Part shown: positions 35,831 to 54,378 of the stretch, one piece after another
Position numbering within the stretch: the first letter of the stretch is position 1
Layout: each line of letters starts with the position of its first letter
Assembly: GCA_020137815.1 (NCBI GenBank)
Contig: CM035351.1
Location: 8,742,001 to 8,806,000, forward strand
Direction of reading: 5' to 3'
From: Hormiphora californensis
Taxonomy: Eukaryota; Animalia; Ctenophora
DNA length: 64,000 bases
Notes under the pieces: model-generated
Databases searched by the model: none
What the model was told of the DNA's origin: nothing
What the model saw: only the letters and a program-made list of their open reading frames with translations
Translations under genes and position numbers: made by a program

Positions 35831-45978
<10,148 letters not shown>

Positions 45979-48005: not shown

Positions 48006-49956
48006 GAAACATCCCCCACACCCCTGATCCCCTGCCAGACTAATCCAATGTAAGTTGATTTGTGGTAGCATTATACTTAAAGTGTGTTGTTTTTAACGCT
48101 GTAAATCAATTGGTCGCCATGGTAACGCTGTGTAAATCAATTGGTTGTCAAGGCAACTCAATGGCAGTTTTCTCGATCCACACACACACTCACCACCATC
48201 CGTGAAAAAAGGGGGGACTTTGGGGGTTGGAATGTGAGTAATATGAAACCTGGTGCTAACTGGGGAGATGTAACTCATTTAGGGAGATCACGTACTCATT
48301 TTAACTCGATCCTTTCCATGTTACTATGCTTCAGCTGCACTTACCATATACACCATGTACTTTGGTTACGAAGTCACCCCTATTATTGCTAGCGCAGAGG
48401 GGGAATTTCATTACCAGGCATGTACTGTATGAACTAGTTGTATTAGAATTAGTTGTGTGTAGCCTTTTTCCCGGATGTTTACGTGCTATAATACCTACTA
48501 CCATGCTTTTAGTTTTCTGCTGAAGATTCTTTGTACCTATATATGTTTGATGTTTTACCAACATTCTATACCTTCAAACTTCTTCTACACATGTGTTAGC
48601 TCTACTACCAGTATTATATACCAGCAGCTGAGTAGTGTGTTTCCTCTATCACTTGTAGTGTTCCCTTTTCGGCTGGTGTTCCCCCTTGCAGCATTGCTCA
48701 GTCAGATGTGTAAATATGTTAATCCTGCTTCAATCACATGTGCTGCAGCAGCTGCTTCATCAACAGTATATATTAGCTCCATCTCCCTCCCTCTCAGGGA
48801 CTTCTAAGGAGGCACACCTGGAACAGTTTCCCGCCCCCCTCCCATGGACACCCACCTCCTGGCCTGAGCACATCTCACCACCTGCGCCACCTATAACACT
48901 ATCTGGACCTGAGTGTCCACGAGGCTGGCCCGTGATTGTGTGTGTGTGTGTGTAGCGGACACAATTTGTTTTTTAGTCGCTCTCTCTCTATTTTTATGTG
49001 CAGTTGCAAGTTAATATGCATTCCATAAATACCAAATATCGCGTTTTAAATCATTTTATAACATTTATTATTGCCCCTTGGGCCGGGTTGGAGGCATGAA
49101 ACCTCGGGAATAATATAGCTACAACATATAGATACATGGTTAGGGAATAGAGAGGAATATCCATGTAGAGCTTCAGGGGACATCGTCAATGAGCATTATA
49201 ATGCTCTATTACTAAAGACATGATGTTATAGGGCACACGTGTGTCTTTACAGAGCACACGTGTGTATTATCAGAGCTGGATCAGCTCAAATTATGGTCTC
49301 ACTTTTTGGCTGGGTGGTATATAGTTGCGTTGTGCCGTAGAGAAACTATCATTCTTGGAACTATGGTATGTCCGCGACTTCTTATACTTCTCGTTCTAGG
49401 CTAAAACTAGTGATCTAGAACTTCTTACTATAGATCGATTCAGCTTGTATTATACTTATGGATATATCTACCTGATCATGACCCAGATTGCCTAATATCC
49501 AATAACTATACGGGATAGTATTCCTATACTCCCCATATATAAGTTCAATTTAAAAAGCACATTTAGTAAACTGATTTGAAGGATTGTAATATAAATTGTA
49601 CAAAGTCAAATAATATTAGATTTTCTAATCACTCTCTTAAACGGGCCGTAATTTCCAATATGGATCACTTGTGGTAAAAATTTCAAAAAATCTGTAAGGT
49701 ATGTCAAATGGTGGTCACCGTCACTTTCTCTCTGTATTTATCTCTCTCTCGCTCTATCTCTATCTCTCGCCCTCTTCCTTTCTCTCTTTCTTTATCCCTC
49801 TCTCTCACTCTTTCTCTCACTCTCGTTCCCTCGTTATGTCTCACTCTCTCTTTCTTTCTTTCTCTCTCTGTCTGTCTCTCTCTCTCTCTCTGTCTCTCTC
49901 TGCCTCGCTCTGCCTCTCTCTCTGTCTCCCTCTGTCTCTCTCTGTCTCTCTCTCCT

Positions 49957-50013
<57 letters not shown>

Positions 50014-50128
50014 AGCTCTCTCTCTTTCTACCTCTCTCTCTATAAATCATGCCACGTGCACTGCAAAAAGTTCTCACTGAAATCCTGCTTCAATCATTGC
50101 GACACCCGGTATAAGCAGGGGACTCGCA

Positions 50129-50202
<74 letters not shown>

Positions 50203-50391
50203 TACACAGACCTAGCTGTCCGTATCAGGGGTGCCGATATGAGAACTCATTTTCCATGCATCGCACACCCCCGAACTGCAATCATGATACTGTCCGTTAT
50301 CTGACTGGTCATCGTACAATAGCTGGTCCGTGATGGATCTCTTTTCTGAATGTTCTCTCTCCTAGTTCTCTACACTTGTTCGGCATGGTAT

Positions 50392-50714
50392 TCACGGTGC
50401 CAGACTCCCATCAATAGTGGAGGGAGCGTTCCTCAGGAAGAGAAAGGGAGAGGTAGGGGTGCTGTACCTTCCACACTGCTTCACCCACTCTATGTGTCCA
50501 GCGAACCATCGTCTGTGTGACTGGAGAATGGATTGGGCAACTGCATCTTCCGGGTCGATCATTGCACTGAGCTTGTTGTGGGTCCTTACTATCTCATTCG
50601 CCCTGTAGAGAAGGGTGGGATTAGTCGCGAATTCATATAAACGTTATGCCGAATTGATCATCCCATAGACGGGGTGAAGTAAGGGAAAAAAGATACGGAG
50701 CGGTATGGAGACAT

Positions 50715-50773
<59 letters not shown>

Positions 50774-53276
50774 GGGCTATGCGCTATATGCTTGCGCAAG
50801 TCCACCCCCATCCAGGATAAAGAAGATCACTATACCCGGCCCAGCTGTAGACGAAGGCACGTCAAGATCTTTAGTGTGATCGCACGGGGTGTCACAAACC
50901 TATTGACTGTTTGTATCACAGAATCGTTGAATGAGAGACTCTGATCGTGATGAGACACCCCACAGACATAGTTGAACTTGTCCATCTCTATATTCACCTG
51001 ATGGGGGGAATGCAGTGTGGTTAGAATGTGTGGTTTCCTTGGTAACCATACTGTGACAAGAACACAACAATAGATCCTTCCGGCTCTATTGTCCGAAAGA
51101 ATAATATATCATTAGATCACGTAAGCACAGAACGATTCATGTGACGGGAAAGAATCTTTTTGAATTGACAAGGCTACTAAGTAAATCTGTTACATGCCGA
51201 AAGGCTTTCAGTGGGAATCGGCTGTGTTTAAAGTTCGGTAAGGCGTCTGTTAATCATGCCGAAAAAGTAAAGTAGCTTTGATAGCTGCGCTTGAATCTGT
51301 CACAACCCCTCCCTTAGTCAGTGGGATGGATCCCTCCCACTGACTAAGGATCTGCACGAACCTGTTTTTCGTATGAGAAGATGTCATTTAGAATAGCCGC
51401 GTGGAGGGCTGTCTGGTATAGGCACTGCGACAAAATGTCATTATCTCGACTCTGACCATATGCCAATCCTCCTGAAATACATTTGTCATGATAAATTTGA
51501 GATCACGGAACTTCCGGTCTCTTAAACGCAGTCTCGCCTTCCCATTCACTAGGGTTTATTGTAGCGAAATTCTACTTGGTCGACATTCGACCGGTCATAA
51601 TTATGCATCCCATGGCCACTCCCTTGGTTACCTGCAAGATGAACACACATAGCGCCAGCAGAATCATTTGTCCTCAGCTTCTCGAAGTCGTTCATGCTCA
51701 AAGGAAATGGTTTTCCTTGTTTCATGATGTTGATGTAGGGTGCACAAAGGGTCGCTCCGTGCTTCAGATGGTCCCTTAGATGTCCGATGAACTCCTTGTA
51801 AAACATTCTACTAAAGTGGATCAGAGATTCCGCTCTGAGAAAACGGGCCAGTTTCACCTGAACAAAATGTGACATTCAGAAAGGGAGAGAGTGACATTCA
51901 GAAAGGGAGAGAGTTACTCAGAATCGATAGATGGATTTTTATTCAGATCTAGGGAGGGACTGGGGAAAGGAGGATTGAAACAAAGAATTTAGCTATTTTA
52001 TATCCGCCCACAGTTGCTATAATAAATGAGATGGGTGGATGACAATTCATCAGTATGTGTGCGGTGTGAGGAGCTAGGCGCAGGTCGTTAGTATTTATAC
52101 TGTATTCTTGGTCCCCGCCCACGCACATTCCTCCTAACCCCTCAACCAACCACCATGTATGGGCAATGGGCATTGGGCAAATTGCAATGCCCATAATTGA
52201 ACATGTTCTTCACCCTGTACCATACTTCATAAAGCACCCCCCTCATCCATATTTGGGCATGTCACCCATAAAGCTTCCGCCACTTCCACCATATTTAGGA
52301 ATATTTCACCAAGCAGCCTCTAATTCCTCCCCCTCCCTCAAGTCTCAACTTACCACAGGGCTTGACACCTCAAAGTGGAGCAAGTCTGGCATATCCACGG
52401 CCTCCTCATCCACCAGGTTGAGGATGTCCTCATTGGTCCTTGCCACTTCATCCTCCCATCCTTGGAACTGCTCCTCGCTGTGGATCTCAGGGTCGTAGTC
52501 AGTGAGAAACTTGTCCCGGATATCGTCTATAGTGTAGACCAATGACATCCATGTGATGTAGCAACGGAGTTGGTCAAAGTTGAGCTGGGGTCCGGTCAGG
52601 CTTGCCAGGGTTGTGATCTGAATAGAGAAGGTGTTAGCTGATATCTTGTCGGTTGGAAGTTGAGTTAGAACAAATTCATAAGGCAGTCTTTTCAATTCTT
52701 TCTTCCATACAACTCGATAAACTGCAGCTTATATTGCATACTCACATTTAGACTGGTCCAGAAGTGCCGTTTTCGGTCCCCTCGCTCACCAGGACCGATA
52801 AGGCCGACAAACTGGAGTGTCTCCAGGAACCTTTCCAGAAGGCGGGGTGTGTTGTGCACGTTCTGTCCCGCAGAAACGCTCTCAGGGGAGAGGGGCAACT
52901 CGAAGTCAGTCTCCTGCAGACTTGACACTAGGTCCGTGGTGCGGTCGATCTCTACAAAAAACAGAGAATATACAGTGGTTAGATATTATAGAAAGATCTT
53001 TTGGGTCAATATTTTGACATATGTGTGCAGTGTGCAGTGTGTGGTCGTGTGGCTGGTAGTCAAGGTGTTAGCCATTTAGATTTAGAACCACTAGAGAAGG
53101 TCAACAGTGTGCCTATACAGTGCAAACTTGAGGCAGACAGAAAACCACAAAGTCGATTCAAAACTATTGGTATACAGCACGGTTCAAAGTGACGAAAGAT
53201 TGATTGAATGGCTACTGCTACTACTGCATTAATCTAAGCAAATCATTCGGCTATGCTATCACTATTCCCTATCCTT

Positions 53277-53307
<31 letters not shown>

Positions 53308-53718
53308 TCCCCCAAAGTGATAGCCCTCATTTCTAGAAACCTCAGCTATGTGAGAGAGAGTTATGGAAAGTGCTTCAATTTGAGGTCAGGCCACTCTCCT
53401 CGAAGTTGTGGGTGGGCAGGAGTAACGACACGACGCAGTGAGAGACCCACATGTAGAAAGGACCCTGGTACGGGGAAAATTTACGGAGAGGGTGATTGAA
53501 GAATATAATATGCTGATCTATACGCCCAGGCTGTGTCGCGACCAAACATCAGTACTAGGTGGAAATGGCTGCCTTTTTGAAGTATGGAACTGTTTGAGAT
53601 GTTAAAGGTTATTACCAGGGGTGGTGCATAAAGACTGACTCCGGGTCATTTTCCGTTTCCTGGTGGTGTTGGTGGGTTCGTTGATACTCGTCATGATGCT
53701 TGGAACTGGAACTGGCAT
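50392..53718 (-). CDS. Class I terpene synthase (microbial-type, alpha-only), 6 exons, ~447 aa; one frameshift near 52705
   Basis: Exons 53718-53616, 52951-52354, 51857-51632, 51471-51362, 50997-50900, 50602-50392. Motifs in canonical order: DDIRD (52527-52513), RTNDSAG, NDIFSYEKQ (51388-51362), WVKQCGRY (50487-50464). Exon 1 is the least certain. Confidence 0.88.
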
Positions 53719-54378
53719 AACGATGGAGTTGATGATAGCAGTCGATTAACACAGTTGTAGAAGGGATTGTAGAACTGAAATTCACAAGCTGAACTGATTG
53801 GACACGATACAAGAAAAGTTGTGAGACTAACTCGTCCGCTTCGTTTAAGTAGGGTCACTGGATTTGTCTCTCTCTCTCTCTCTGCCGACACTCCCCGCTC
53901 TTCCGCCTATTCTATTGCGTCACGTTACCTGCCGTACCCGGGTATAATTGATATTCAATTGCAGACAGTTGTTGGTGATCCGATATAGACAGTGCCAGAT
54001 GGATGGAGATCTATTCTGAGAAATCCCTCTCTCTCTTAGTACTGCTGCAGATGATCGTCTTTAGTCGCAATGACGTTATATGAGGGGCGGCATACAGATC
54101 ACTCCGACTCAGCTATAGGATAACGCGAGGGAGATCAGACAACACAGGAGCTATGGATACTGCGACCATGAATTGCGTTTTGACCACACGATCAGTTCTT
54201 CTTCGTGATTTCATTCTACCACGCAACTTCCCACATGTGATCTATCTATTTGATGGTGATTAACTTGCCAAGCCCTGCTAAAGAACACATACCATCGGTA
54301 TTTTCACAATCTCACCAAAGTGAATCGGCAGATCATTAGCCTTGGAATTATATAGCTCTCAATCCCTTCTCTCTTTCC

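Follow-up and report, generated by a model that had tools for sequence, protein, structure and literature searches.

A spliced, single-copy ctenophore gene for a probable microbial-type class I terpene synthase

Introduction

Host-encoded type I terpene synthases have been described from several groups of animals, namely octocorals (PMC12685057), sponges (PMC9992776, PMC13483135) and springtails (PMC13638087). By description, these enzymes are encoded in the host genome, many of them by genes with introns, and fall into separate clades for which an origin by ancient transfer is debated. Here we analyse a gene in a 64,000-nucleotide stretch of the genome of the ctenophore Hormiphora californensis (GenBank assembly GCA_020137815.1, contig CM035351.1, positions 8,742,001 to 8,806,000), hereafter the window. 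We consider it likely that the ctenophore itself carries this gene, in a single copy that is spliced and expressed, and that the product is a microbial-type class I (ionisation-dependent) terpene synthase with the alpha domain only (family PF19086). As such, the gene appears to join the known group of animal microbial-type terpene synthases.

Compared by description with the octocoral, sponge and springtail enzymes, the gene differs in belonging to another phylum and in that terpenoids are known from those animals and none from ctenophores. Insects have arrived at terpene synthases by a separate evolutionary route, from isoprenyl diphosphate synthases (PF00348). The ctenophore protein resembles these in being an animal enzyme predicted to make terpenes from prenyl diphosphates, but its orthologue from Mnemiopsis leidyi (P0002, see below) has no PF00348 match at E<=10.

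A sequence-only reading of the window had proposed a terpene cyclase here and knew of no described example from ctenophores. The searchable literature agrees with the latter point: our full-text search found no paper describing a ctenophore terpene synthase or cyclase. Such an enzyme is unmentioned in the four reports cited above, in a survey of horizontal transfer in Mnemiopsis (PMC6005172), in a compendium of metazoan transfers (PMC13342648) and in the description of the Hormiphora genome (PMC8527503). As far as we found, the family call can be retrieved from public databases, and the gene itself is unnamed and apparently unstudied.

Results

The gene is read on the minus strand in seven exons (Table 1), and all six of its introns have GT..AG borders (the strand was read through 50300-53900, and frames and borders were checked by script). 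From 5' to 3' the introns measure 664, 128, 496, 160, 364 and 297 nucleotides, and every one has a pyrimidine-rich tract before its AG end. The exon phases are mutually compatible (0,1,0,0,1,0,2), the coding length sums to 1218 nucleotides, or 405 codons plus TGA, and an in-frame TAA stands ten codons upstream of the ATG. The sequence-only reading had the same start and stop; its six exons and approximately 447 amino acids are replaced by seven exons and 405. All of the motifs that it quoted are found in the exon translations: YTIDDIRD in exon 3, LRTNDSAG in exon 4, ILNDIFSYEKQ at the end of exon 5, FNYV in exon 6, and WFAGHIEWVKQCGRY followed by STPTSPFLFLR, both within exon 7. A residue count also bears out its spacing of 42 amino acids from the pyrophosphate-sensor Arg to the Asn of the NSE-like motif.

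Table 1. Positions of the gene, its exons and other features in the window. Identities are to proteins of Mnemiopsis leidyi (P0002), Pleurobrachia bachei (P0010) and Bolinopsis microptera (P0013, isoform X1). The last column gives matches to a profile built from bacterial sequences (see text) as profile positions, score and best score of 200 shuffles of the same exon.
Feature	Position	Strand	Description	Identity to orthologues	Bacteria-only profile
Terpene synthase-like gene	53718..50392	minus	ATG at 53718; stop TGA at 50394-50392		
Exon 1	53718-53616	minus	103 nucleotides; 34 codons + 1 nucleotide; donor G|GTAATA; N-terminal extension with basic cluster, outside cyclase core	39% over 33 amino acids, N-terminus of P0013 (residues 30-54)	
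Exon 2	52951-52746	minus	206 nucleotides; N-terminal helices of cyclase domain; GT-AG borders	41%, P0002 residues 14-71; 98.5%, P0010	
Exon 3	52617-52354	minus	264 nucleotides; helix D with DDxxD (DDIRD in YTIDDIRD), then acidic stretch	52%, P0002 residues 73-155	68-103; 17.1 bits; 4.5
Exon 4	51857-51632	minus	226 nucleotides; middle helices and pyrophosphate-sensor Arg segment LRTNDSAG	59%, P0002 residues 161-235	152-205; 7.7 bits; 4.7
Exon 5	51471-51362	minus	110 nucleotides; helix H, NSE-like NDIFSYEKQ, Gln at third metal ligand position	61%, P0002 residues 237-272	220-246; 17.2 bits; 2.2 (partly circular)
Exon 6	50997-50900	minus	98 nucleotides; FNYV segment, Asn in invariant column	50%, P0002 residues 276-302; 100%, P0010	251-277; 4.9 bits; 1.4
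Exon 7	50602-50392	minus	211 nucleotides; W...GRY motif and C-terminal tail S-x-TSPF-x-x-LR; stop TGA 50394-50392	59%, both P0002 and P0013	301-340; 22.9 bits; 7.3
Probable 5' untranslated region or upstream transcribed stretch	53727-53856	minus	one contig of run X2, one mismatch; weak support		
Sugar-transporter open reading frame	41646-43184	plus	512 amino acids, uninterrupted		
Tandem duplication	51869-51912		perfect, 22 nucleotides; intron 3		
Palindrome	51312-51349		38 nucleotides; intron 5		
(CT)n/(GA)n tracts	49700-50200, 50707-50777, 53272-53317, 53857-53900		flanking the gene and in introns 1 and 6		

Orthologues in other ctenophores support this model. Exon 3 was run with HMMER against the whole of a set of 1.84 billion representative proteins and returned eight, all with the TIDDIRD context, of which one is full length (P0002, 375 amino acids, a hypothetical protein of Mnemiopsis leidyi). 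Bolinopsis microptera contributes two isoforms of one uncharacterised protein, X2 (P0009) and X1 (P0013), and P0010 is a gene model of Pleurobrachia bachei (EukProt, 637 amino acids). All seven exons are collinear with P0013 (residues 30-54, 67-124, 126-208, 214-288, 290-325, 329-355 and 358-426, at 39-61% identity), and therefore no exon is missing from the model. Collinearity likewise holds for P0002 and P0009. The N-terminal extension encoded by exon 1 is optional, and it is common to the window gene and Bolinopsis isoform X1. The exons are 97-100% identical to P0010, which joins exons 2 and 3 and exons 3 and 4 exactly as modelled here. As a gene model, P0010 is itself garbled: it runs through exons 2-4 and then exons 2-3 again, lacks exon 5 and retains intron 6, which probably reflects duplicated haplotigs in the older P. 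bachei assembly.

The short database proteins are bacterial-style open reading frames (ORFs) called on ctenophore genomic contigs, in which read-through into introns marks the exon borders. Among these fragments from lobates, three intron positions are shared with the window gene. That between exons 2 and 3 is seen in P0003-P0006, and both borders of exon 4 are seen in P0014 and P0016. The lobates have one additional intron inside the equivalent of exon 3, where P0003-P0006 break off into the intron after DSINNHA. Taken together, the shared intron positions and the orthologues indicate that the gene, with at least three introns, was already present in the common ancestor of cydippids (Hormiphora/Pleurobrachia) and lobates (Mnemiopsis/Bolinopsis), and so is older than their split.

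Transcription and splicing were assessed with contigs at 99-100% identity from two marine environmental RNA runs of different studies (X1 and X2, the RNA nature of the latter being a guess only); no run of the organism itself contained the stretch. The intron at 51472-51631, between exons 4 and 5, is removed in contigs from both runs, which join 51470/51471 to 51631/51632 and match the model to the base. The intron at 50603-50899, between exons 6 and 7, is removed with the same precision in one oligo-dT metatranscriptome contig of run X1, which joins 50601/50602 to 50899/50900. The skipped segments end in CT..AC on the plus strand, that is, GT..AG in the orientation of the gene. Only two coding differences occur in the environmental contigs (50452 and 50488); both are at third codon positions and synonymous by manual count.

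The sequence-only reading had also placed the gene in a ctenophore genome and regarded it as a host gene, not contamination. On both counts the evidence is favourable. The nearest relatives are from Pleurobrachia bachei, which belongs to the same family as Hormiphora, at the identities given above, Mnemiopsis and Bolinopsis. The window occupies 8.74-8.81 Mb of a 9.98-Mb contig and is thus interior to it, and the gene has the same G+C content (46%) as the rest of the window. To these are added the splicing seen in poly-A RNA and the three intron positions shared with lobates. The (GA)n/(CT)n tracts on which that reading had leaned are present. In two other ctenophore genomes the orthologues are located on contigs of 20-23 Mb. 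We found no paralogues in the genome, only the gene itself, which is therefore single copy. A genome search with the PF19086 profile found no match, but it found none in the control genomes either and is uninformative.

Family membership is clearest in the full-length orthologue. P0002 matches PF19086 (Terpene_syn_C_2) with 41.4 bits (E 1.8e-10), above the curated cut-off of 23.7 bits, and this family is already attached automatically to P0002 and P0009 in public databases. There is no match at E<=10 to PF00348 (polyprenyl_synt) for either P0002 or the window exons, nor to the plant-type families PF03936 and PF01397 for P0002. The only other family reported for P0002, trichodiene synthase (PF06330, TRI5), reached 15.2 bits (E 0.01), under its 25.2-bit cut-off, and was rejected. 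All PDB sequences that P0002 matches at E<=10 bear the names of terpene synthases or cyclases, of class I, in listings that carry no source organism. The best chain, at 31.5 bits, is 6q4s_A, which the sequence table files under pentalenene synthase and the Foldseek table under the title a-eudesmol synthase; it is followed by BcBOT2, and TvTS and aristolochene synthases are also found. These alignments cover the aspartate-rich region and the region from NSE to RY. In a protein-language-model atlas all of the top clusters for P0002 are PF19086 terpene synthases (scores 0.93-0.96).

The exons of the window gene were compared directly with a profile made from bacteria only. For this profile, bacterial genomes were fished for NDIFSYEK words, and 12 ORFs related to P0002 by phmmer were kept. 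Exons 3-7 match the profile in the correct order, and each scores above all 200 of its own shuffles (Table 1). For exon 5 the score is in part circular, since its own motif served to fish the bacteria.

Structure prediction is consistent with the family assignment. An AlphaFold2 model of P0002, made from an 18-row alignment that includes the 12 added bacterial rows, reached a predicted local distance difference test score (pLDDT) of 86.7 and a predicted template modelling score (pTM) of 0.88. Foldseek returned 215 PDB matches to this model at E<=1e-3, of which the best 50 are without exception sesqui- or diterpene synthases of class I. For these 50 the target-normalised template modelling (TM) scores are 0.65-0.81, mostly 0.7-0.8, and the closest have a root-mean-square deviation (rmsd) of 3-4 Å. 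The check was run on the orthologue, and it gives the class I terpene synthase fold.

Residues expected at the active site of such enzymes are largely in place. The DDIRD of exon 3 aligns with the bacterial DDxxD column, with D103 invariant and D104 and D107 nearly so. Across ctenophores and bacteria the columns of R222 (the sensor Arg), R349 and Y350 (the RY pair) and N281 (the Asn of FNYV) are invariant, as are those of the Asn and Ser in the NSE triad. Also conserved between them are the Trp before RY and the Asp three residues after the sensor Arg. At the third position of the NSE triad, Glu is found in 12 of 12 bacterial sequences and in 6q4s_A, and the characterised BcBOT2 has Asp. Ctenophore proteins carry an acidic stretch of approximately 30-40 residues after helix D that is absent from the aligned bacterial enzymes.

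The protein was compared with a range of microbial class I sesquiterpene cyclases (Roseiflexus T-muurolol synthase, 6q4s, BcBOT2, Cop4 and epi-isozizaene synthase). It shares with them the alpha-only fold (in the P0002 model, at target TM 0.7-0.8 and rmsd 3-4 Å over approximately 320 columns), the DDxxD motif, the sensor Arg, the Asn and Ser of the NSE triad, and W...RY. It differs from them in sequence (14-22% identity), in having Gln at the third NSE position, and in the spacing from Arg to Asn, which is 42 residues in ctenophores and approximately 46 in the microbial enzymes. Further differences are the acidic insertion, the optional N-terminal extension of exon 1 and the spliceosomal introns of the ctenophore gene.

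Immediately after the RY pair, ctenophores and bacteria share a tail, S-x-(T/N)-SPF-x-x-LR, in which the SP..R columns are invariant. This RY..SPF..LR tail recurs in a set of terpene synthases from Chloroflexota, Gammaproteobacteria and Myxococcota. We know of no described role for the bacterial form, RYxS-x-TSPF-x-x-LR. A set of bacterial loci from metagenome-assembled genomes (L023, L055, L086, L095, L082, L032 and L076) has the same NDIFSYEK core and post-RY tail as the ctenophore proteins, although this set was fished with the motif itself and is a biased sample. It gives the best non-ctenophore scores found (56 bits for L023 versus 31.5 bits for the best PDB chain). All of its members have Glu where ctenophores have Gln, and the two ctenophore sequences do not nest within it. 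ORFs carrying the tail lie at L023:5041-6066, L086:3612-4700, L095:224-1279, L082:3485-4570, L032:1304-2881 and L076:3-1316, and they are scattered over Chloroflexota, Methylococcaceae and other Gammaproteobacteria, and Myxococcota.

Outside ctenophores the relatives that we found are distant. Word-indexed searches of 5.8 billion proteins (with P0002, a two-row profile and the C-terminal region, at E<=10) returned only two lobate proteins. A metagenome scan gave distant relatives only (23-32% identity), and a scan of a viral collection gave none. The best bacterial ORF, L023 from an Aggregatilineales genome, scores 56 bits at approximately 22% identity; among 301 sampled genomes of its class the family was found in one, that same genome. 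A maximum-likelihood tree was built from the two lobate proteins together with 17 bacterial or metagenomic sequences, a sample with no fungi, corals, sponges, springtails or amoebae; in it the ctenophores fall outside all bacterial sequences, on a branch of 3.5 changes per site. The ctenophore proteins thus appear as a clade with a very long branch and no close non-ctenophore relative among the sequences found, and therefore no donor can be named.

Discussion

If the protein works as its relatives do, it would bind a linear prenyl diphosphate (farnesyl diphosphate being the likeliest) through a Mg2+ cluster held by the DDIRD of helix D and the Asn/Ser/Gln triad of helix H, with the sensor Arg of LRTND and the RY pair of the C-terminus closing over the diphosphate. 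Ionisation would yield a carbocation, to be cyclised in a hydrophobic pocket. It is only by homology that we infer catalytic activity, substrate, product and biological role. Polyprenyl synthase (PF00348) loci are present elsewhere in the genome, and therefore prenyl diphosphate substrates should be available. We tentatively suggest, at somewhat less than an even chance, that a lineage with a naturally remodelled metal site (Asn/Ser/Gln) makes a novel terpenoid or prenylated metabolite that serves as a signal or in defence.

Several observations weigh against reading the gene as a terpene synthase. Neither activity nor product is known, and neither is any terpenoid from ctenophores. The third NSE ligand is Gln rather than Glu in the window gene, Mnemiopsis and Bolinopsis, all three ctenophores in which it can be read, and this substitution could make Mg2+ binding weaker or alter the reaction. 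The sequence-only reading called the motif NSE-like and passed over the Gln. RNA supports two of the six junctions that splicing of the gene requires, and the other four rest on collinearity with orthologous proteins. The evidence on family and fold is carried by the lobate orthologue P0002, which is 50-60% identical to the window protein, and the confident model of P0002 needs the rows of bacterial terpene synthases; with ctenophore rows only, pLDDT falls to 50. Scanned singly, the exons stay below the Pfam threshold. Only exon 5 matched PF19086, at the right profile positions (134-160) with 13.2 bits (E 0.074), and single-exon searches of PDB gave nothing, as did NCBIfam. We do not count these nearly blank scans as evidence against the family, because the exon pieces are too short.

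The rival that we take most seriously, although we judge it unlikely, is that a terpene-synthase fold has been turned to another job, as a prenyltransferase or as a weakly catalytic or non-catalytic protein that binds prenyl diphosphates. There are named precedents for such reuse of the fold in algal N-prenyltransferases and bacterial carbazole prenyltransferases. The Gln found at the third metal ligand in every readable ctenophore is what such a change of function might leave behind, and the great divergence of the clade (3.5 changes per site) and the acidic insertion after helix D point the same way. So do LvqB4, CqsB4 and DsKabA, prenyltransferases that turned up as weak fold matches to an initial model of low quality (pLDDT 50). 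However, the 50 best PDB matches of the confident P0002 model are all cyclases, and the DDxxD motif, the Asn and Ser of the triad, the sensor Arg and the RY pair have all been kept. Moreover, Glu-to-Gln mutants of a fungal aristolochene synthase reportedly retain partial cyclase activity. The gene could also be a decaying relic, a transcribed but non-functional pseudogene, as the non-canonical NSE triad and the lack of a known product might suggest. We find this very improbable given that the 405-codon frame is unbroken over seven exons, that the lobate orthologues are intact with invariant catalytic columns, and that both coding differences in the environmental transcripts are synonymous.

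If the locus were a contaminant from bacteria or fungi, a chimera of the assembly or the result of a very recent horizontal transfer, this would account for the mainly microbial membership of the family and for the fact that the closest non-ctenophore sequences found are bacterial. We give such explanations almost no credence. The gene is interrupted by six spliceosomal introns, of which poly-A RNA confirms two, and it lies in the interior of a 9.98-Mb contig with a base composition equal to its surroundings. Two other ctenophore genomes have orthologues on contigs of 20-23 Mb, and three of the intron positions recur in lobates. The best bacterial identity is approximately 22%, the metagenomic relatives are distant and viral relatives are absent from the collection scanned. 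Recent transfer is excluded by these data. The data are compatible both with an ancient transfer to stem ctenophores and with long vertical inheritance accompanied by strong divergence.

Host-encoded terpene cyclases of animals have been recognised only recently, and the octocoral, sponge and springtail cases each opened new natural-product chemistry. An expressed gene that is conserved across distant ctenophores points to unstudied terpenoid chemistry in an early-branching phylum. It also supplies a datum from the deepest animal branch on whether the terpene synthases of animals derive from old gene transfers. If our interpretation is true, the origin of the gene, be it stem-ctenophore transfer or pre-metazoan descent, would bear on how animals repeatedly gained terpene chemistry. 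In addition, the natural change from Glu to Gln in the NSE triad offers a probe of how strict the requirement for that metal ligand is.

Other features of the locus

Gene clusters are reported from octocorals. Around the gene studied here there is no sign of a clustered pathway: no cytochrome P450 is among the matches listed for the several Mb around the window, and the nearest listed on the same contig are at 1.7 and 2.0 Mb. The neighbouring ORF for a major facilitator superfamily (MFS)/sugar transporter, 7 kb away, matches PF00083 with 99.8 bits and PF07690 with 71.5 bits.

Within the gene, a repeat search found a tandem duplication in intron 3 that ends 11 nucleotides before the acceptor of exon 4. 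The palindrome in intron 5 has 19-nucleotide arms that are 95% complementary, with no spacer, and starts 12 nucleotides past the donor of exon 5. The (CT)n/(GA)n tracts yield long spurious Leu/Ser-rich ORFs in the ORF list.

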